Source of the DNA: Rebecca billardiae RCC1528
Taxonomy: Eukaryota; Protista; Haptophyta
DNA length: 64,000 nt
NCBI GenBank assembly: GCA_965240325.2
Contig: OZ251254.1
Location: forward strand, 310,001-374,000
Direction of reading: 5' to 3'
Within the stretch, counting starts at the first letter, position 1. Each line of letters begins with the position of its first letter. Positions 1 through 13,204 of the stretch are shown here, one piece after another. The translations under genes and the position numbers were made by a program. Under the pieces are notes generated by a model. That model made no database searches, was not told the origin of the DNA, and worked only from the letters and a program-made list of their open reading frames with translations.

Positions 1-576
1 ATAGCCGAACGCTGCGCCGAAACTGATTAGGAGGCACACATAGAACTGGGTAGCTCGCTCGACTAGTCGCGGCTGCGAGGGCACGAGCGAGGCGAGGAGG
101 CCGAGCGAGGCGGGGCTGGCGAGACAGATGGGCAGGACGAGGAGCGACTCCAGCCCCAGCGCGAGCGCCGCGCCCACGAACGCCACCGCGAGCACGATGG
201 CTGCCACGCTGAGCGCCAGCATCGGCAGCTGCACCCGCCGCCGAAACCGGCGGCCCGCGCGGTGCGCGTCGTCAAGCGCGGCGCGCACGTGCGAGTCGGT
301 GCGCACGGGCGAGGGCTCTGGCGTGCGCACCGCCGGCGAGGGCTCGCTCGGCGACGCCCCTAGACCCGCCGACGACGAGCCGCGCGGCGGCGGCGAGCCG
401 CTCTCGCGCCGCACCGCGGCCGCGTCGGCGCGCGCGCGCCGCGCGCGCTCGAGGCGGCAGACGGCGAAGACGCGGCCCTCACACGCGGCGGGCTCGGGCG
501 GTGGCGCCGACTCGTCGGCGTCGCCGCCGCCGCCGCCGCCGTCACCATCGCCTGGCGTGACGACTGCGCCCGCCAT
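1..576 (-). CDS. Multi-pass membrane protein, 3'-partial (runs off the left edge)
   Basis: ATG at 576; the frame is open to position 1, so it is absent from the ORF track. MAGAVVTPGDG..., then hydrophobic segments LPMLALSVAAIVLAVAFVGAALALGLESLLVLPICL and ATQFYVCLLISFGAAFGY. Confidence 0.55.
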   Translation of the reverse strand, partial: MAGAVVTPGDGDGGGGGGDADESAPPPEPAACEGRVFAVCRLERARRARADAAAVRRESGSPPPRGSSSAGLGASPSEPSPAVRTPEPSPVRTDSHVRAALDDAHRAGRRFRRRVQLPMLALSVAAIVLAVAFVGAALALGLESLLVLPICLASPASLGLLASLVPSQPRLVERATQFYVCLLISFGAAFGY

Positions 577-1539
577 GCCACCGGGCGCCGGCCGCCTCCG
601 TTGCTTGCTGCTGCCCCAGTGTGCCCTGCTGGGCAGCTGTATAACCGCGCGCGTCGCGCTCCGCCTTATGGCGGTCCGGTGTTTACGTTGGGCGGCTGCC
701 TAGCTTGCCTGGGGCCGCCAGACGTCACGGGGGGCCGGGCGGCGAGACAGCGCCCGCCCCCACGCGGACGCTGACTCAAGCCGCACCCTGCCCCGGCGCG
801 GCGATCCAACGCCGAGGGAGGGCGGGCGGGAGGCGGAGGAGCGCAGCTGGTTGTCCGTGCGGCTGCTCGGCGCCAAGCGTGGCCCGTCGGCTGGGTTTGG
901 TAGTCGGGCGGCGGTCCGGTCGGCGGTCGGGCAGGGCGAGGTGCGCCGTGCGGTCGGGCGGGAAAGCGGACGGCTGCTGGGCGAAACTCGCTCCTGTTCG
1001 CCAAAGCCGGTCACTGCCCGTCAACTCCCGGCGCGCGCTCACTTTTCTGCGGTCCGCGCCAAAAGCGAGCTGCCACACGCTCGGAACGCTGTCCGGGGGC
1101 GCGCTGCGAGCTCCGAGCTCCGAGCCCGTCCGGGCGGGGGTGCGGTCGGAGGGGCGCTGGAGGAGGGTATCGGGCGGCGGCGAAGCGGCGCCGGCAGTCA
1201 TAACGCGATAACCGCCGCAGACTGCCAAACCCGCCACTCCCGTCGCGTCGGCCATCGCCCCATAACCGCGCGCGTCGCGCTCCGCCTTATGGCGGTCCGG
1301 TGTTTACGTTGGGCGGCTGCCTAGCTTGCCTGGGGCCGCCAGACGTCACGGGGGGCCGGGCGGCGAGACAGCGCCCGCCCACAGGGGCGCAGCGCCAGGC
1401 GCCACGCCGGCATGGGCGGCGTCGGCCGGCGCGGTCGAGGCCAGGCCCGGCCCCGACCCCCAGAGACGCTGCGCCCGGCCACGCCCCGACGCACGCCGTC
1501 AGCGCCAAGCGCGTGCCGTCGGGCGGGGCAGCTCCCGGG

Positions 1540-1730
1540 AAGTACGTGCGGGGCGCAGGCCCCGCCCACCGCCCCGCAGCGGTGATCTCGGCCGCGGGAA
1601 GCCCCAGGAACGGCCAGCGTCGCCACGGCCGAGCGTCGAACCGAGTTGGCGCCAACACACGTTGTGGGAGCCCCAGCGCCCGACACTCATCGTGCAGCCA
1701 CGCCAGATACGCCGCGCGAAAGCCTCGCAC
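1540..1730 (-). pseudogene. Degenerate tyrosine recombinase C-terminal fragment
   Basis: Across two compensating 1-nt frame changes it reads YLAWLHDECRALGLP..GANSVRRSAVATLAV-LGLPAAEITAAGRWAGPAPRTYF. This matches the YR pattern HSxR...G.....I...GRW......Y, with H replaced by N. Confidence 0.65.
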
Positions 1731-2011
1731 GCGCGCCAACCCGCCCGGTGTCGGCCGTCGACGGCGGGCAGCACCCCGAGCTCCGCGAAGCGACGTCCAG
1801 CCAGCGTGCGTAGCCCTGAATCGCCATGCGCCCCTTGGACCTTGGACGCGAAGGGCGAAGCGCCGAAGCCCGCTGCCCGGCTGTGGCAAACCGCCGGGCC
1901 GCCTGCGCTGTGGGAGCGATGGCGGCCGGTGGAAGCGGCGGGGAGTAGGCGACGCACGCCGCGCGAACGAGGACGGTCGCGCGGCACGCGAGCGACGGCG
2001 GACGCGCCGCG

Positions 2012-2076
2012 GATGATCGGCGCGCACGCATGACGATCGGCGCATGATGATCGGCGCGCGCGCATGATCGGCGCAT
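2012..2076. repeat. Short tandem array of GATCGGCGC..CAT units inside the YR element
   Basis: Four imperfect units: gatgatcggcgcgcacgcat / gacgatcggcgcat / gatgatcggcgcgcgcgcat / gatcggcgcat. Confidence 0.8.
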
Positions 2077-3026
2077 AGGAGCGCAGCTGGTTGTCCGTGC
2101 GGCTGCTCGGCGCCAAGCGTGGCCCGTCGGCTGGGTTTGGTAGTCGGGCGGCGGTCCGGTCGGCGGTCGGGCAGGGCGAGGTGCGCCGTGCGGTCGGGCG
2201 GGAAAGCGGACGGCTGCTGGGCGAAACTCGCTCCTGTTCGCCAAAGCCGGTCACTGCCCGTCAACTCCCGGCGCGCGCTCACTTTTCTGCGGTCCGCGCC
2301 AAAAGCGAGCTGCCACACGCTCGGAACGCTGTCCGGGGGCGCGCTGCGAGCTCCGAGCTCCGAGCCCGTCCGGGCGGGGGTGCGGTCGGAGGGGCGCTGG
2401 AGGAGGGTATCGGGCGGCGGCGAAGCGGCGCCGGCAGTCATAACGCGATAACCGCCGCAGACTGCCAAACCCGCCACTCCCGTCGCGTCGGCCATCGCCC
2501 CGAAATCAAGTATCAACGACGTCTGCGGCCCAGCAGGGTCCGGACCGGGAGGGGCGCGTTGGCACCGCACCTCATCGAGGTGGCCATTGCAGCAAGCGGC
2601 CGCCCCGCGCTCGGAGGCACGCGCTCCAGAGCGCGCTCTGACACCACACGGGGAGGGTGCTGCACCTGGATGGTGTATCCCAGCCACCTCGAGAGTGCAG
2701 CCGCGCCAAACACCTGCTTGCGCTGTGTCAGCGACGCCGCGCGGTCCGGACTGATCGAGCCGCCCACCGCGGGCCGAACGAAGCGGGAAGAACTGGAAGA
2801 TGAAATGATGGGTGGGCAGGTCCACATGCCCGGCGTAAACTGCGCGCTGCTCGCCCGCGAAGGCAAGCAGCGCACCCACAGTTCACTAAGAATATAACTG
2901 ATGAATAAGAGTAGGCTACGCACACAGCTCAGGCACAGGACCGGCGCCGAATTGTTCGCGGGCCGGTCATGCGCCATGCGGCATGCCCCGGGCGCCAACT
3001 GTCACCGCCGGCGCCCGGCATGGAGT

Positions 3027-4965
3027 TAGCCTGGTCCAAACGCACTGGAGCACTTTCGGGGATTTTATCGCCAAATGAATGCGGGGCCCTAGGCACGCGC
3101 TCACACCCGGAAACAGCGCATTAAATGGACCCAGCCCGGGCGGAGCAAAAGTTTCGGCCTAAAAATCGCATCCGCGGCCCGTCGTGAGCGCGCGCGCGCG
3201 CGCCGCGGACAACTACGGACACATAGAGAATCGTCAGTCTGAATGTGGGTAAGTACTTAGCCGAAATGAGCCCAAACGCACGAACTTACTTATTGGCGTA
3301 CGTCGAGGCGAGCATGAACCTTGGTACAGGCCATTAGGATGGGCTGTGGTCTGTGCGCAAGTGGCCGTACTCAACTACTGCAAGATCGACTATAGTACCC
3401 ATTTGTACCCGCATGGTATGGGCAATGTACCCGCATAAATATGAGGTCTGGACCTGTATAATTACAATGCCACTATGTCTTTACATATTCGCCATAGGTG
3501 GGTAGCTGTCCCAGGCTGCACGATTAGTGCGGCGCTCGGGGTGCAGTGGTCGGACGAGGCTCCGCCTGGCCTTCCGCGCACTCCTGCAGACAAGAAGAGG
3601 GCCGGACTCCCACCCGGCCAGGCGTGCGGCAGTCGGTCAGGTGCTGGACCTGGTCTGAAGACCATCTCCTGCGTGGCGACTGGCCGATCTGCGGCACAAC
3701 GCGCGCCGCCGTGAGCCACACGGCAGGTTCGCAACGGATCCGGATCGCGTGTCCATGGCGGCGTGCATCGAGTCATTCAAGCTGTCTAGTCGCGTGCCAC
3801 GCCCGCCCTTTCACTTGGGGCATCAGTACTGCCTACAACGACGACATGTGCGTCCTTAGATGAGGCATAATCGCGGTTCTAGCTGCTCGTCCAAGGGTCA
3901 GATCGCACGTCTTTGCTCGCCCGACAGCCTCAACGGCGGACTGATGTGATCCGCGGGTGACGATGCGGCCGCTTCGAGTGCGCCTCCGGCCACCACCGGG
4001 GTGGGGATCGTTCATGGGCACCCTCTGCGTGCCATGACATGCTCTGGCCATGCGTGGTGGCTTGGCCCACCGCGCGTAAACGGGAAAGACACCCGAGCAC
4101 GTGCTTCCGAGCCACCCGAATGGCACAATGTGCCACCCATGGACACCAAACACGTGCCAGAGCGCGAGCCTTGCGTGCTGGAGTAGCCGCACGACACCAA
4201 GGAAGACGTATGAGCGCTCTCAACCATCTTCAAGCGACGACTCCGTCGACTCTGCCTCACAGACCGCGGTACGATCCTCGACCTTGTGCTCGCAGCAAAG
4301 GCCATGACGGTAAAGCAGCACCCAGGCGATGGGAGTCAGCCGGCAGCCACTACACTGCGACTGTACACACCCAGCCCCGCAAGGCGAGCCATCCTGCTCG
4401 CCACCAGCCCGTCATACAGCTCCACGAGGAGCACAAATCGACAGCCGCCGCTCAGGACGACCCATGCGCAAACGTGACGGGACTGGCCGCATGAAGCGTT
4501 GGCGATGCGCAGCGCGCCCAAAGCTGGTGGTGGCATCGAGTACATGCTAGGGGTAGGCGGTGCCCCATGCGAGCCGTCGCGTGCCGCGCATATTCCCGGA
4601 GGTGCCCCTTCTCGAAGGCACGGCGTAACCCAGCAGGTGAGCGTTCGACGCGCGCCGTCGGGCGAGAAGTCGACCTGGCGACGGACCGCGGGCGGCGGAA
4701 GCAACGCAGACATGTCGCTCAAGGTGTGCACGCACACCACCGGGGCACCCGAACGATGTGTCCAGCACTACACCTGACATGAGGCGGCGCAGTCGTCCAG
4801 TCGAGGCTCTCGAGCCCCTTCCCGACCTTCGTCGCGGCGAGCCGTCGGACGGCCGGTGGCGATTTTTGACGAGCGCGACGAGCGACGAGAAAAATCGGGA
4901 GAAATGAGGCGCCCAAAATCCGAAAAAGGCTTTTTCACTGGCGAAAATCGGGATGGACCAGGCTA
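3027..4965. mobile_element. Non-autonomous DNA transposon (12-bp TIR, 7-bp TSD)
   Basis: TAGCCTGGTCCA at 3027-3038 and TGGACCAGGCTA at 4954-4965. Flanking direct repeat ATGGAGT at 3020-3026 and 4966-4972. Interior is lower in GC with no recognisable transposase. Confidence 0.75.
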
Positions 4966-5078
4966 ATGGAGTGATGAAGCCGCCTTAGTGGGGTCAGAGC
5001 TCCGACCGTTACACTCCCGAGTGACACAATCTCCCGAAATATCGTGAATATGAATATGAATAAATATCTCGTCCTCGT

Positions 5079-5141
<63 letters not shown>
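5079..5141. repeat. (TA)n microsatellite
   Basis: Direct read. Confidence 0.98.
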
Positions 5142-5145
<4 letters not shown>

Positions 5146-5384
5146 TTATGAGTCCATTTAACGGTTCGTAATCGGAATAGTTATTAGGCCTAATTCCAGG
5201 GTGTAGAATAACTCCTGCGCGTTTTGATCATCGTGAGACGTCGGGCGGTTCCCGACGACAGTACTAACGACGACGTGGTATGCAACGGGCGATGTGCGAC
5301 CTCAACCTCGACGCGATTATCTCGGCAATAACATATATATATAGTAATAACTATAGTAACTACGGTACTAGCTCTGATGAGTAC

Positions 5385-5387
<3 letters not shown>

Positions 5388-5463
<76 letters not shown>

Positions 5464-5514
5464 TATAATATATATATATATATATTATATATATATTATA
5501 TATATATTATATTA
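5388..5514. repeat. (TA)n microsatellite, left half of the Copia target site
   Basis: Direct read; ends in TSD TATTA at 5510-5514. Confidence 0.98.
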
Positions 5515-6236
5515 TATTGGGTAAACGCGAGCTCCGAGCGTCTCGAGCCCTGCTAAGAGCTCACCGGCACGTCCTCGGGCGCGTCGTCGGTGACGCCCAC
5601 GAAGGCAATCTCGACCCTCGCTCCTCTGACGAGCGAAGCTAATCCTCCTGCCGCAACCAACTTTCGGTTGCGCAGGGTGACACGGCGTTTTGCGGCCCGG
5701 CTCGGGAATCTTGTAACCTTCCTGAGCCCCGCTTCCGTGCGTCCGCCAATCGCAGGCGTTACCGACGCACCGCCGTAAGCTCATCTTTCCCCCAGGTACT
5801 CGGTAATGTCATCGGACCTGGGTAAGCTGCGCACGGACCCATGATCCCGGATTCTCGATTCTCAAAACTGAGAATCCGGGCGTCCATGAATGAAGTGATC
5901 GAGTCCGTTGTTCCTTGGACTCTTCCACGATGGCGCCCGCCTGTGCCGCCGGCGTGCCATCCGTGCCGCGCTGCGCCGGGCCGTACCGCCCGTGCACGCG
6001 CCGCGTCCGTGTCGCTCCGCGTCCGCGCTGCCGCGTCCGCGCTCCGCGTCCACGTCGCTCCGCGCCAGCGCTGCTGCGCTCGCGCTCCTGCCGCCGCGCG
6101 CGCCGCGCGCGCGCGCCGCCAGAGCCAGCCACTGCGTAGCTGATGCCGCCGGCCCGCCTGGTGCGGCGCCGGCCCTGACGTCCCAGCGGCGACGCCATCT
6201 GCTGAGATGCGCGCCCCAGGCTGCGTCAGCTCAACA
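5515..6236 (-). repeat. 3' LTR (TGTTG...CAATA on the minus strand)
   Basis: Matches 12193-12914; small ORFs inside both copies translate identically. Confidence 0.95.
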
Positions 6237-6245
6237 CCCCCCCTC
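6237..6245 (-). promoter_or_regulatory. Polypurine tract
   Basis: GAGGGGGGG immediately 5' of the 3' LTR on the minus strand. Confidence 0.85.
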
Positions 6246-6272
6246 GACAGCCATAGCCGCGAGCTGCGCCGC

Positions 6273-9200
6273 TTACCGCGCGCGCGTCGGGTGTCGGTCC
6301 ACCATGATGGCGTCGACGTGCCGCTTGAACGTCGCACCGTCCGTCGCCTTCGTCATGATGTCAGAGTGGTTGAGTGAGGTGTGTACCTTGACCACCTTTA
6401 CCTTGCCACCCTCCTGCGCGTCACGCACATAGTGATGCTTGATCTCGATGTGCTTCGAGCGCTTGTGGTGCACAGGATTCTCCACGAGGTCGATAGCCCC
6501 CTTGTTGTCCTCTCGCACCTCCGTCGCGTCCCGCGGCGGCTGCCGCATGGACTCGAGTATGCTCCGCAAGTAGCTCACCTCGCGGCAGCAATCGCTCAGC
6601 GCGACGTACTCCGCCTCCGTCGAGCTCAGCGAGACTGTACCTTGCAGCCCGCTGTGCCACGACACCGGCGCCCCATTGTAGAACACAATGTATCCACCCG
6701 TCGACCTGCCCTTGGTCTCCACCGGATTGCTTGCCCAATCGGAGTCAGCGAAAGCAAGTAGGTCGGGGTGCTCGGAATCTGTCGCAAACTTGAACAAGAT
6801 TCCCAATCGCGGGCATCCACGTAAGTAGCGCAGCACGCGCTTCGCACTTACCAGATCCACCGCCCGCGGACATGACATGCGTCGCGTCAGCATGTTCACC
6901 GCGTGCGCGATGTCCGGCCGCGCCGTGACCATCGCAAACATGAGACATCCCACCATCGCCTGGTAGTTCTCAATCTCTGCGCGCTGCAGCAACGCCTCGT
7001 CGTCGTCGCTCAGCTGCGCCCGCGCCGCCGGCTCCGGCGTGCGCGCCGGCGTGCTTGCGTTCAAACCGAACCGCTGAAGCACGCTCTCGACGTACGGCCC
7101 CAGATGCATCAGGATGCCGTCGTCATGAACTTCAAACACGGCGCCCAGGAACTTATCGAGCCGCTCACTCAGCTTGATCTCGTAATGCTCCTTCAGGTCA
7201 GCCGCCAGCTTCTCCACCGCGCGCGCGTCGCGCGTCAGGTTGAGAAACAGCAAGTCGTCGACAAAGCCGCCCGCGATGATGAACTCGCCCGGCGCCGACT
7301 CCTTGACGTAGATGCACGGCGCACTCGGACACTCCGAGAAGCCGCGCGCGAGCAGCTGGGTGCGGTGCGTGCGATGCCACGCGCGCCCAGACTGGCGTAG
7401 ACCCGGATACGCCTTGAGGCTCCGGCCCACGACTTTGTACCCCGGCGGCGCCTGCGTGCTCGGCACGTAGCCCGGCGGGAATGAGAAGAGAGGCCGCTCA
7501 TCCGGCTTCAACTCCGAGTTGAGGTACGCGTCCTTGACGTCGCCCTTCGACAGTATGCCCAGCGCCGCAACCGACGCTGCTCCCAAGTCGACCCTCGCGC
7601 CCGCCTGCTGAGCGGCGATCGCAACGAGTAGTCGCACTTGTTCCGGCCGGATCGTCGGAGCAAAGACCTCCTGAAAGTCGATCCCCGGCCGCTGTAGGTT
7701 CCCCAGTAGCACCGACCGCGCCTTGAAGCGCGTCACCTCGCCCTCCGGGTTCGACTTGACGTCAAAGACCCATTGGCTCGGCAACACCCGCGTGCCCTCC
7801 GGAACCACCACCTCTTCCGAGGTGCCGAGCAACTTGTGACCTTCCAAGTGCTCGAGCATGGCGCCCTGCCACTGGGGCGCCTCCGCCGACCGCATCGCCT
7901 CGCGATAGTTCGTCGGCACCTTCACGTTGATCTTCTGGAACACCGACGCGGCGCTGACGACGGCAGTAAGCAGCTGCGGCCGTCGGCGCGACGTCCGATC
8001 CCTGCGAAGCGGATCGTGTCCCATATCCAGACCGGGCGGCGGCGCGTCCTCGATCACGCCGTCGTCACCGTCTGCGCCGCGCGGCGGCCCGCCAGCATCT
8101 GCTGCGGCCCCGCGCCGTGATTCCGTCGGCGGTATCTGATCCTGCCGACCCGGCTGCGTCATCGACGCGCCTGCCCCGTCACGCCCGCCCTGCGGCGTCG
8201 GCGTCGACGGCTCTGCGCCAGCGCTGCTGCACCCGCGATGTCCCGCGTCCACGCTGCTGCGCCCGCGCCCCGACGTTGACGCATCTGCGTCGTCGTCGTA
8301 CCCGACGTCGAACTCTGTCGCGTCGTCATTCCCGGCGTCGGCTGGCGTCTCGCCGCCGTCGCCGTCCTCGTCCTCACAGTCGGCGTCACCACCGACCGGA
8401 CGAAGTCCGCCGCTTACCGCGGCGCCGTCACCATCACCCACGTACGCGCCACCGTCAGGTGCGCCCAGCGACGAGTGCCCCCCCTCGACCAGGTCGGTCT
8501 CGTCGATGCGTACGTCACGTGAGTGAACGAGACGTCCGTCGTCTAAACGACATACGTACCCGAGTACGTAGCGCCATGTACCGCGCCACTGCACGCCGTG
8601 CCCACCCCAGAGATAGACACGTCCGGGTAGTGCGCGCTGCCTCAGCTGCCCCAATGCATTGCGCCGTGCGCCCAGCATCAGCACGCGGCAGCGCGCTCCA
8701 AACGCCACGTGATGCTTCCACGTCGGGCGTTTGCCAAAGAACAGCTCATCCGGCGTGAGCCACTCAATGTCTCCATCGTCACGAATAATACCACGTGACG
8801 CCAGTCGATTGCGCGACGCGCATGCGTGCCACGCCGCGTAGTGCCAATCGACCCTCGAGACTCCACGCGCAACGACCGTGGCGCGCAGTCTCGACTTCAG
8901 CGTGCGGATAGCGCGTTCCGCCACGCCATTCGAGCTCGGCGAGTCGGGAGCCGACGTGACCGTCGACGAGAACCCAAGCTTCGCCAGCTCACCCTCGACG
9001 TACGTACTCAGCAACGTCGAGCCACCGTCGGTGTGAATATGGCGTCGCGCCATAGTACACCCCGACGCCAGGACCCAATGCGACATGTGCATGGCCCCTG
9101 TTCCAAGCAACTGCGCGTACCAGCGGAATGCCCGACCAACCTCGGCGTCATCCAAGCTGCGTAGCGCGTACACTTGCCATCGACGTGAATGCCCATCGAT

Positions 9201-9587
9201 GAATATGATCCCATGAGGATACCCTCCACGTGCGCCATCGGCCCCAACTGGTAAGTCGATCCGCGCCATAGAGAAGATGTCGACGTGCGTCACCTGCCCA
9301 GGGTAGTGCGCCGTCGGCATCGCGTCCGCGAACGACCGCCGCGTCATGCCCGCCGCCGACTGCTCGTCAAGCGGCTCACGCCGCGCGTTCGCCCCCTCCA
9401 TCCCCTCGGCCACGCGTCGCGTGCGCTCGAGTAGACGTTGGTCATTGGTGCCCGTTCGAACCGACCAAGTGCGTAACCACGCCGGATCAGCGCCTCGCGC
9501 CGCCTCCGTAGTAGTAGTGGTATCAGATACCGTAGTGGTTGTGTTTGTGGCTCGCACCTGCGCGGGTTCCGGGCTTAGGCGTTTGGG
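6273..9587 (-). CDS. pol: Pol part: integrase - reverse transcriptase - RNase H, probably entered by -1 frameshift (the open frame extends to 9983)
   Basis: IN: HVDIFS, IFIDGHSR, HTDGGS, SPSSNGVAERAIRTL. RT: WVFDVK, FKARSVLLGNLQRPGIDFQEVFAP, DVKDAYLN, FVDDLLF. RH: FADSDWA, STEAEY, EDNKGAI, KRSKHIEIKHH, DIMTK. Confidence 0.93.
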   Translation of the reverse strand, partial: PKRLSPEPAQVRATNTTTTVSDTTTTTEAARGADPAWLRTWSVRTGTNDQRLLERTRRVAEGMEGANARREPLDEQSAAGMTRRSFADAMPTAHYPGQVTHVDIFSMARIDLPVGADGARGGYPHGIIFIDGHSRRWQVYALRSLDDAEVGRAFRWYAQLLGTGAMHMSHWVLASGCTMARRHIHTDGGSTLLSTYVEGELAKLGFSSTVTSAPDSPSSNGVAERAIRTLKSRLRATVVARGVSRVDWHYAAWHACASRNRLASRGIIRDDGDIEWLTPDELFFGKRPTWKHHVAFGARCRVLMLGARRNALGQLRQRALPGRVYLWGGHGVQWRGTWRYVLGYVCRLDDGRLVHSRDVRIDETDLVEGGHSSLGAPDGGAYVGDGDGAAVSGGLRPVGGDADCEDEDGDGGETPADAGNDDATEFDVGYDDDADASTSGRGRSSVDAGHRGCSSAGAEPSTPTPQGGRDGAGASMTQPGRQDQIPPTESRRGAAADAGGPPRGADGDDGVIEDAPPPGLDMGHDPLRRDRTSRRRPQLLTAVVSAASVFQKINVKVPTNYREAMRSAEAPQWQGAMLEHLEGHKLLGTSEEVVVPEGTRVLPSQWVFDVKSNPEGEVTRFKARSVLLGNLQRPGIDFQEVFAPTIRPEQVRLLVAIAAQQAGARVDLGAASVAALGILSKGDVKDAYLNSELKPDERPLFSFPPGYVPSTQAPPGYKVVGRSLKAYPGLRQSGRAWHRTHRTQLLARGFSECPSAPCIYVKESAPGEFIIAGGFVDDLLFLNLTRDARAVEKLAADLKEHYEIKLSERLDKFLGAVFEVHDDGILMHLGPYVESVLQRFGLNASTPARTPEPAARAQLSDDDEALLQRAEIENYQAMVGCLMFAMVTARPDIAHAVNMLTRRMSCPRAVDLVSAKRVLRYLRGCPRLGILFKFATDSEHPDLLAFADSDWASNPVETKGRSTGGYIVFYNGAPVSWHSGLQGTVSLSSTEAEYVALSDCCREVSYLRSILESMRQPPRDATEVREDNKGAIDLVENPVHHKRSKHIEIKHHYVRDAQEGGKVKVVKVHTSLNHSDIMTKATDGATFKRHVDAIMVDRHPTRAR

Positions 9588-12192
9588 GGCAGCGCAGCGC
9601 CAACGCGCCCCCGCCCCGCACCCACGCGCCGCACCGGCGCCCTGCGCCGTGCGCGCGGCTCCGCCGGCGCATCGCCGACGTCCGGCCCCACCTGGCGCCG
9701 TACGATCTCGGCGCGCAGCGTGGAATCGCGCGGCAGCTGCACGACGCCGCCTCCCAGCGCCGTAAAGTCCGCAGTGTTGCCGCGCTGTGAGTAGTGGAAC
9801 TTGATGCCTGCGTCCGCGCAGTGTTCGACCGACAGCAGCGGCGCCGTGACGCGCCGCGACGCCCACGCCTCGATCTCGAGCGTGAGGACCTTGTCGCTGT
9901 CGTCGTCCGCCGCAAGCTTGACCACCAGGGTCCCGCGGTGAGTGACCCGCTCCCGCGCACCGTTCCCCCACTCGATCTGACATGCGCCGTCCACCGGGGT
10001 AAGATTCGTCAAATCCTCGGCCATGGCGATGTTCTTCCGTGCGCCAGTGTCAAACACCAACGCCCGCGTGTTGTCCTCCGGCGGCGCCACGCGTGCCTCG
10101 GCCGCCCGCGCCGCGACGATCTCGATGTCCTCGTCGCGCTGCGCCCTGCCGCCGATAGCCGCGCCAATAGGCGCCAAGCCGAGTCCGGCGCCGGCGCCGC
10201 CGCCGTCTCCGGCGTCAGCGTCACCGTCGCCACCAACGGCGCCGTCGGGCTCGTCACCCTGCTCGGGTGCGAACGCGACCTGCGTGCGGACCGTGCCGCC
10301 GCCGTTGCCATTCCCGACCACGGCGCGGGTGCTGCCCCCGCCACCGCCGCCGCCACCGCCACCGCCGCTCCGATGTGAGCCACGGCTGCGATCCGACCGC
10401 GTCGACGCCGCGTCATCGCCAGCGTTCGAGTCGCGATCAGCCTGCGTCACCTGCGGGCAGTAACGCTTGATATGCCCCACGGCGCCGCACTTGTAGCAGC
10501 GCGGCCCGTGCGCGTCGTCGGAGTCGTCCTGGCCTCCGCGGCCGGCGCCGCGGCCAGTGCCGCCGCCGCCACCGCCACGACCTCCGCCGCCGCCACCACG
10601 GCCAGCCGGCGACGTCGTGTCGCCGCAGCCGCCACCCGCCGACGCCGCCGCCGCCTGCGCCAGGCGGAGCCCGTCGATTGGGTGCGCACGGGTAGTCCCG
10701 CCGCCTCCTGGCATGCGGCCACCCGCCCCTGGGCGCCCAGGGCCGCCGCGGTCAACCCGCTTGCCCTTGGAGAAGTCCCAGTCCTCGAACTTGCCGTTGA
10801 GCTCGTGCACGAGCTCCTGCACGTCGAAGTTCGTCACGGTCCTGTAGTCCTTCGACTCGTACCGCGTCCGCATCTCGATGCCCGCGCCCACCGACGGAAT
10901 GAACTCGATGAGCCGCGCAAGCATCTCCGCCGCTGGCGCTGCGTCACTCAGCTCCTGCAGCAGCACGTGGTTGTGCTGTAGCACCTGGAAGAGCTCGAGG
11001 GCGCCGACGCCGTCCTTGCCGCAGTCCGGCAGGACCGTCCGATGCCAGCGTGCCCGCACCGACATGTACTTCCGCATGTCGTCGGGCTTGCGCATGCGCA
11101 GGATCGTCTTCCACAGGTACAGAAACTCGCGCCCCGGCGTAAGTGCGCCCCGGCGCGCGCGCTCCTCCTGCACCTCCGGCTGCGTCTCCATGAGGCGGTT
11201 GATGTGCTGCCACGCAGCCTCCGTCACCCACGACCGCAGCTCGGTGCGTAAGAAAGCCGTCCCTTTCTCGTACTGCGCCCCGGCGTACTTGGCGGGGTCC
11301 GCCTCGTCGCCGTCCGGCGCTGCCTCCAACACGCTCTGTCGGAGCTTTATGTCCAGCATGGCGTGCTCGCTCGCCTGCCGCTCATACATCTGTTCCTCGG
11401 TCTCGCGCTCGCGGCGGTAGAGCTCGCGCGCGCGCGGATCGAGCGTCACGGCAGCGCCGCCCGCGGGCGCCGCGCCACCGATCCCGCCGGCGCCGCCCGT
11501 AGGCGCCGCGCCGACGCCGGCACCGCCCATAGGCGTCGCGCCGTCAGTCCCAGCCGGCGCACCTGCAGCGCCGCCTGTGCCCACACCCGGACTGGGTGTG
11601 CCGGCCGCCGGACCCGGAGAAATTCCGGATCCGCCGCCCGCCGCCGGACCTGAACCCGGTCCGGTCGCCGTCGGGCCGCCCGGAGTGGCTAAACCACTCC
11701 CCGCGCCCGCCGAGGCAGCCTGCGCGTAGCTTGGCGCCTGCCTCGCCCCCGCCGCCGCCGCCGCGCGTTCCGCCGCGGCCCGGCGCTCGGCGTGCTCGCG
11801 GCGCTCGTGCTCGTGGCGATGATCGAGCAGCCGCTGCTGCAGCGCGTAGTTCTCACGCGCCAGGTCCATCCGCTCGGCACTGACCTTGATCATCTTCGCC
11901 GCGGATGGGTTGAATGTCTCCCACGTCAAGTTGTACTCCTCGAGCGTGTTGATGCGGTGCTCCGCGTTCGGGCCATGCGTCACGATGATGCCGTTCAGTG
12001 CGGACATCGTAGCACCTTGCCCCGCCGGAAGCGCCGCCAGCCTGCTCGCCGATTGCGCGAGCCAGCGCTGCTGATTGCCCTTGTCGTTGAGCATCCCCAC
12101 GTCGACCGAGCCGTGCATCCGGCCGCTCGTGCCCATCGGCGCGATCGATGAGAAAGCGCCGCGCGTACGATCCCTCCCGATCGCTGCATGCA

Positions 12193-12193
<1 letters not shown>
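9575..12193 (-). CDS. gag: Gag with CCHC zinc knuckle fused to aspartic protease
   Basis: 872-aa ORF with CYKCGAVGHIKRYC knuckle and protease LVFDTGARKNI...IEWGNG...PLLSV. Exact start uncertain. Confidence 0.9.
9581..9587 (-). promoter_or_regulatory. Candidate -1 ribosomal frameshift slippery heptamer C CCA AAC
   Basis: X XXY YYZ pattern in the ORF1 frame, one codon before the TAA stop. A -1 slip gives PKRLSPE of the pol frame. Confidence 0.55.

Positions 12194-13204
<1,011 letters not shown>

Follow-up and report, generated by a model that had tools for sequence, protein, structure and literature searches.

The segment at positions 641-2501 (1,861 bp, minus strand) of the window, i.e., of the whole 64,000-nucleotide stretch of DNA analysed here (contig C38, 310001-374000), most probably (roughly 85 %) represents a single dead, non-coding deletion copy of a recently amplified, Ngaro-like family of tyrosine-recombinase (YR) retrotransposons, whose internal deletion likely arose during copying and whose integration likely depended on a recombinase acting in trans. 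Within this family (family 1) it is an ordinary deletion derivative, one of eight different one-off derivatives among the 15 copies present in the genome searched (72 Mb in 41 contigs, about 73 % GC, evidently eukaryotic).

On the minus strand the element has the order A1-internal-B1-A2-spacer-B2, with identical repeat copies and with B1 adjoining A2 without a gap. Viewed on the plus strand, 641-762 corresponds to 1262-1383 (119 nt identical, divergent thereafter) and 837-1261 to 2077-2501 (identity 425/425), and 100 % identity of repeats of 425 and 119 nt far exceeds chance. This layout had been proposed from the letters of the window (sequence-only reading), together with the identity of the repeat copies and the outer ends of the element (5' GGGGCGATGG..., 3' ...GCGGTTAT), and on all three points the proposal holds (A identical at 425/425 positions, B at 119/119). 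A correction is required for A, which measures 437 nt in the parental element; the window A1 is devoid of the inner 12 nt, which were removed by the deletion. The individual parts are as follows, in the order of the minus strand and ending with the neighbouring gene:

2077-2501, minus strand: A1, the 5' terminal repeat on the sense strand (425 nt), corresponding to parent positions 6332-6756 and identical to A2 at 425 of 425 positions
2076-2077, minus strand: deletion junction, at which parent positions 1437-6331 (4,895 bp) are absent
2076-1384, minus strand: internal stretch between A1 and B1 (693 nt)
2003-2076, minus strand: tandem-array remnant detected by TRF, about 4 units with a period of 14-17 nt and of the CGCGCGCATGATCGG type
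1876, no strand assigned: private substitution, the sole one in the window copy (C, where 12 sister copies have T)
1710-1828, minus strand: N-terminal remnant of the tyrosine recombinase, starting with MAIQGYARWLD, frameshifted, 83 % DNA identity to the start of the intact L033 ORF
1350-1718, minus strand: C-terminal remnant of the tyrosine recombinase that includes GRW and the catalytic Tyr, together with an out-of-frame NSVRR box
1262-1383, minus strand: B1, the internal copy of the 3' terminal repeat, with 119 nt identical to B2 (B1 = 119-122 nt)
1200-1290, minus strand: region of the B1-A2 junction, where GCGGTTAT is directly followed by GGGGCGATGG at 1262/1261, mirroring the presumed circle junction
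825-1261, minus strand: A2, the internal copy of the 5' terminal repeat, 437 nt by the parental definition, with 837-1261 matching the window A1
763-824, minus strand: unique spacer from A2 to B2 (62 nt)
641-762, minus strand: B2, the 3' terminal repeat, complete in the window copy and ending with GCGGTTAT
1-576, minus strand: first exon of the neighbouring host gene, with the ATG at 576-574 and a 425-codon ORF that runs off the window start

The host ORF has the same orientation as the element, and B2 lies 64 bp from its ATG, as had been claimed. Its hydrophobic stretches are consistent with the designation as a membrane-protein gene. Elsewhere in the window, the GC content falls to 54-60 % near 4-6 kb and 12-14 kb (window 5388-13072).

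A genome search with the 1,861-bp stretch revealed the 15 near-identical copies of family 1 (99.8-100 %). Only the window copy matches over the full length, and the 1,861-bp form is hence single-copy in 72 Mb. The 14 other loci, distributed over 10 other contigs and embedded in unrelated flanks, agree with positions 1-1436 (99.8-100 % identity) but beyond that point run on into a tandem array instead of crossing the 1436/1437 joint; in 12 of these 14, a separate match to A follows about 3.6-6.3 kb further on. The genomic dispersal of A and B, a test attached to the sequence-only reading, is thereby established, with the same ends at all 14 other loci. Although the plus strand also permits a reading as two tandem units (X...Y X...Y), the probability that the stretch is a local duplication in tandem, or an artefact of assembly, is practically nil: the 14 loci on other contigs, whose flanks are unrelated, share its ends and its internal junction, and the exact internal junction occurs 49 times genome-wide. 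Recurrence of the split-repeat architecture at 14 other loci means that the window copy is not a misassembly, and the reading as a local duplication is refuted.

The longest copy of the family (C24:647697-654452, in L031) measures 6,756 bp and provides the parental map. On the minus strand this parent comprises A1, a Gag-like ORF1, a TAG codon, an RT/RNase H ORF2, a tandem array of about 800 bp (parent positions about 1359-2173) that separates the RT ORF from the recombinase ORF, a broken YR ORF3, B1A2, the spacer and B2. The predicted Gag-like protein (801 codons) has a Cys/His knuckle at its end, and ORF2 (573 codons), located in the same frame as ORF1, contains a reverse-transcriptase domain (PF00078, E 2.8e-8). 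The two ORFs are split by a single TAG (L031:5094-5096 in the C24 copy, context GTC TAG GAG GCG), which is kept in five of five copies checked (L031, L007, L008, L012 and L032); the conservation of this in-frame codon suggests stop-codon readthrough in a Gag-stop-Pol arrangement. As to the longer RT/RH/YR parent anticipated by the sequence-only reading, a Gag/RT parent of 6,756 bp does exist, but its recombinase is broken, as in all 15 copies.

Along its 1,861 nt, a single base (window 1876) sets the window copy apart from 12 sister copies. Over the left 1,436 nt, no more than one private substitution is present in 10 of the 12 sister copies that were compared with the window. By this measure the window copy is very young, in agreement with the recent mobilisation claimed for it.

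Projected onto the parent, the window copy has kept positions 1-1436 and 6332-6756. Besides the inner 12 nt of A1, it has lost the Gag-like ORF1, the RT/RH ORF2 and most of the array; the absence of Gag and RT had been recognized correctly, both being located within the deleted segment. The deletion joint is blunt, without microhomology. Seven other copies are also internally deleted, each in a distinct manner (2424-3195; 2045-3714; 2219-3762; 2134-4507; 2227-4218; 2241-4648; 2160-3453 plus 4484-5571 in one copy), which amounts to nine large deletions in 8 of the 15 copies. In all eight deleted copies one breakpoint is situated in or near the array (inside in four, 45-70 nt beyond in three, about 250 nt beyond in one), and the overlaps at the joints are mostly 0-3 nt, with 16 and 20 nt at two joints. 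Because of this recurrent position of one breakpoint, deletion during reverse transcription is the most likely origin, and we infer that the deletion of the window copy probably arose during copying and not after insertion. In this reading the reverse transcriptase, or a repair step, would have skipped from the array to a far-upstream template site while the copy was made.

Alternatively, a full-length copy may have been inserted and later have lost 4.9 kb from the chromosome, e.g., by replication slippage or break repair at the array. Such a course of events is unlikely, even though tandem arrays are fragile, the blunt joint resembles end-joining and the resulting sequence would be identical, rendering the deletion undatable from sequence alone: nine large deletions in 8 of 15 very young copies would imply an implausibly high deletion rate, and error-prone reverse transcription represents a simpler source of many one-off deletions. 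The number of large deletions in such young copies therefore favours error-prone copying over slow chromosomal decay. Splicing was rejected as the cause of the deletion, since the deleted segment starts with CCGCCT and ends with ATC on the sense strand and does not conform to GT...AG. An unusually stable RNA structure of the array as cause of template switching was likewise rejected; shuffled versions of the array RNA fold more stably than the array itself (z = +2.83), and pausing at RNA structure is thus unsupported.

The sequence-only reading had gone further and regarded the stretch as a mobile miniature element. A true miniature non-autonomous lineage, like TOC1 or SIRE of VIPER, would imply an older deletion and mobilisation of the short RNA in trans. 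In line with it, the window copy still has every cis part (A1, the junction of B1 with A2, the spacer and an untruncated B2), and its insertion shows the precise ends usual for the family, with TTY on the 5' side. In addition, the genome harbours non-coding siblings of 4-5 kb that do propagate, and experiments have demonstrated that DIRS-1 proteins can act in trans (PMC7192593). However, the 1,861-bp form was found once in 72 Mb, no second copy with this internal deletion is present among the 15 family-1 copies, the seven other deleted copies each carry a different private deletion, and the window copy is only one base off the full-length copies. A miniature lineage is accordingly very unlikely, and the claim of a mobile miniature element cannot be upheld. 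The preferred reading, a one-off deletion copy, would entail that the window copy was not copied onward after its insertion. Similarly, the TOC1/kangaroo-like array near the 5' end turned out to be an artefact, because the deletion brought the array remnant to A1; in the parent, the array is located 3' of the RT ORF.

An unrelated split-repeat element was encountered on contig C33 (L039:4173-9799). It contains one 1,286-codon ORF with a PF00589-like domain at its end (E 3.9e-5) and is apparently autonomous. A tandem array with a 36-nt period occupies the interval from the ORF to B1, and arrays in such a position thus recur across families.

Just before B1, the recombinase motifs are split between two of the three minus-strand frames of 1384-2076, NSVRR occurring in one and GRW...TY in a second. 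Pfam searches with the remnant reading frames yielded nothing meaningful, and a six-frame genome search with PF00589 detected a different family only. The remnant was validated via an intact ORF rather than via Pfam. This ORF is encoded in a 2.6-kb sibling element on contig C1 (C1:41569-44141; L033:1501-4073; 76 % DNA identity), which has the A1...B1A2...B2 layout and possesses an open 490-codon frame that reads ...TNSVRRSAVAMLAFLGLPAGEINAAGRWAGPAPRTYFPG... uninterrupted, without Gag or RT. Window positions 1350-1718 match residues 225-347 of the L033 ORF with 60 % identity (E 4.6e-27), and the YR remnant claimed before B1 (NSVRR...GRW...Y) is consequently real, though distributed over two frames. 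As judged from the DNA alignment with the L033 ORF, family 1 has kept the first ~40 and the last ~120 codons, has lost a core of 600 bp and contains frameshifts on both sides of the NSVRR box. Only this recombinase remnant is found in 15 of 15 family-1 copies.

Assignment of the L033 ORF itself was decided by an exhaustive profile search, a word-based protein search having returned two relatives only. The profile was built from four related recombinase ORFs, all four of which show weak matches to phage-integrase SAM-like N-terminal domains, and it retrieved 2,815 proteins at E <= 0.001 from a library of 1.84 billion proteins. Among ten profile matches scanned, three contain PF00589 above the Pfam cut-off and a fourth scores 24.1 bits, just below it; a fifth (P0020) carries an RT upstream of the profile-matched region, as does P0059 according to blastp. 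In the alignment, Arg, Lys, xxArg, Trp and Tyr are in register across the recombinases. The sibling recombinase group has Asn or Thr at the first His of HxxR (Asn in L033), the position occupied by His in most tyrosine recombinases. On the evidence of these matches and aligned residues, the L033 ORF family is a tyrosine recombinase and the window remnant is genuine. No recombinase was retrieved from the PDB sequences, whether the sibling YR by itself or a profile of 4 sequences served as the query. An hhalign comparison with the family-2 YR aligned the right motifs at a non-significant E of 0.042, and the structure that AlphaFold predicted for the sibling YR from a 4-row alignment had a pLDDT of 44.8, too low for the model to be used.

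The motif GTTAT directly followed by GGGGCGATGG constitutes a junction common to about 50 elements. About 110 nt around the B-A junction are ~95-100 % identical between family 1, the C1 sibling and a non-coding split-repeat family of 4-5 kb (L042:516-6010 on contig C16, with about 10 loci like it; identity to family 1, 75 %), while outside the junction the three sibling families share about 75 % identity. Such conservation would be expected if one recombinase used the junction as a common cis site. The L042-type family, with its nearly identical junction, contains several tandem arrays including a CGCGCGCATGATGATCGG-type unit, which is also found in family 1. More distant intact recombinases in the genome share 47-48 % identity, and the B-A junction sequence was not found in their loci; the only intact close recombinase for the ~50 junction-sharing elements is that of the C1 sibling.

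Since no family-1 copy contains an intact recombinase, integration must rely on a recombinase in trans. For the window copy, Gag and RT would have been provided by full-length family-1 members, and the recombinase most plausibly by the intact gene of the 2.6-kb C1 sibling. The insertion sites carry a common signature: TTY directly precedes GGGGCG in the 5' flank of 9 of 14 family-1 copies (GATTTC in the window), as compared to ~1 % expected by chance at ~73 % GC (rough estimate), and a GTTTC flank recurs among sibling elements. The flank motif is similar to GTTAT at the 3' end of the element, a likeness to be anticipated if the two recombine via a short common core. The window copy was inserted at a T-rich site, with GATTTC directly before the element, 64 bp upstream of the membrane-protein gene. 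TA-microsatellite targeting is not seen in family 1, a (TA)n run being present in only one of 29 flanks (15 left, 14 right).

The two ends of the copies differ in precision. The outer end of A1, GGGGCGATGG, is exact and invariant across all copies, whereas the B2 end is complete in 6 of 15. The nine ragged copies start at B2/spacer positions 4, 9, 14, 70, 71, 79, 109, 171 and 173, and a ragged B2 pattern is also present in a sibling family. Target-site duplications are absent in 12 of the 13 copies with both flanks. The exception is a ragged-ended copy on contig C18 (L013/L021), which is bordered by a perfect direct target duplication of 165 bp (C18:217354-217518 and 224209-224373); the duplicated target is part of another repeat. 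Ragged 3' ends and a 165-bp duplication are not predicted by a simple circle-plus-recombinase model. One possibility is the combination of a precise, recombinase-made 5' joint with a repair-made 3' joint on linear cDNA; for comparison, the cDNA of DIRS-1 is mostly linear and single-stranded (PMC7192593).

Two further repeats were observed next to family-1 ends. A terminal inverted repeat family of ~190 nt bounds elements of 2.4-6.3 kb (L013:1310-1500 and partners, e.g., C8:2727945/2734280 and C15:1854414/1856853), and two independent family-1 copies (C18 and C11) adjoin one and the same position, GAATCGGCCCC, of this repeat. A hairpin-forming sequence of ~50 nt (L010:1451-1500; C3:76800-76849), present in at least 40 near-identical copies genome-wide, adjoins a truncated family-1 end.

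These features may be combined into a tentative scheme of divided labour, which we regard as conceivable but rather doubtful in its entirety. The ~50 elements that share GTTAT followed by GGGGCGATGG would be joined by the ~110-nt junction, with one family contributing Gag and RT only, a single 2.6-kb sibling the recombinase only and several families nothing. Integration would often be half-finished, the 5' joint being made by the recombinase at TTY and the 3' joint by host repair, which would account both for the raggedness of B2 in 9 of 15 copies and for the 165-bp target duplication.

Ngaro retrotransposons, reportedly described by Goodwin and Poulter in 2004, are the closest counterpart in terms of overall organization. 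Like the family-1 parents, they have three ORFs (Gag-like, RT/RNase H and YR), internal repeats downstream of the YR and no target-site duplication. Family 1 differs in its gutted recombinase gene, the ~800-bp array between RT and YR, the 62-nt spacer between A2 and B2, the ragged 3' ends of most copies and the Asn that replaces the HxxR His in the sibling recombinase. Ngaro elements are defined by the order A1, Gag, RT/RH, YR and B1A2B2 (PMC8547959, PMC4157794), and internal deletion variants are known for the Ngaros of Cafeteria (PMC8547959). Family 1 displays split repeats with adjacent B1 and A2 (window copy and parent L031), RT/RH (parent only) and usually no target duplication, but the tyrosine-recombinase gene downstream of the RT persists as a remnant only in all 15 copies. 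The family therefore descends from YR elements and is no longer autonomous.

A methyltransferase-like domain defines DIRS, PAT and TOC elements, TOC and PAT being filed under DIRS (PMC4157794). ORF2 of family 1 matches the RT/RH of the RT-YR polyproteins P0059 (E 2e-36) and P0020 (E 3.5e-18), in which only 20-45 residues separate the end of the RT/RH match from the YR match; ORF2 itself ends 30 residues past its RT/RH match. This gap would leave no room for a methyltransferase-like domain in those homologues, which is why the label Ngaro-like is preferred over PAT/TOC1. On sequence grounds family 1 is best labelled Ngaro-like, the methyltransferase point resting on spacing in homologues. From the assignment to the Ngaro/PAT/TOC1/kangaroo type made earlier, a split-direct-repeat YR retroelement is retained, with Ngaro as the apt name, whereas PAT, TOC1 and kangaroo are less apt in view of the three-ORF layout and the 20-45-residue gap.

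TOC1 of Chlamydomonas reinhardtii, reportedly described by Day et al. in 1988, also contains tandem repeats. By description it may be likened to the window copy in being non-autonomous, in having split terminal repeats and in drawing its enzymes from relatives; TOC1, however, forms a multi-copy propagating family, as opposed to the single-copy form in the window. It is classified as a non-autonomous DIRS retrotransposon (PMC9940879). DIRS-1 of Dictyostelium is likewise a YR retrotransposon, in which an internal region restores the ends and proteins act in trans, but it has inverted terminal repeats and an internal complementary region in place of the split direct repeats of family 1. An LTR retrotransposon (Copia/Gypsy) was rejected on account of the split repeats (A...BA...B), the lack of an integrase match and the lack of a 4-6-bp duplication.

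By itself, the locus in the window is of little weight, being a dead one-off copy upstream of a membrane-protein gene, the promoter region of which may have been displaced by the insertion. The burst of 15 near-identical copies provides a clean view of error-prone retrotransposition, with internal deletions in 8 and truncated 3' ends in 9 of 15. The integration step of tyrosine-recombinase retrotransposons is still poorly understood, and the RT and the recombinase, which apparently reside on separate siblings sharing one junction, constitute a potential natural trans-complementation system.
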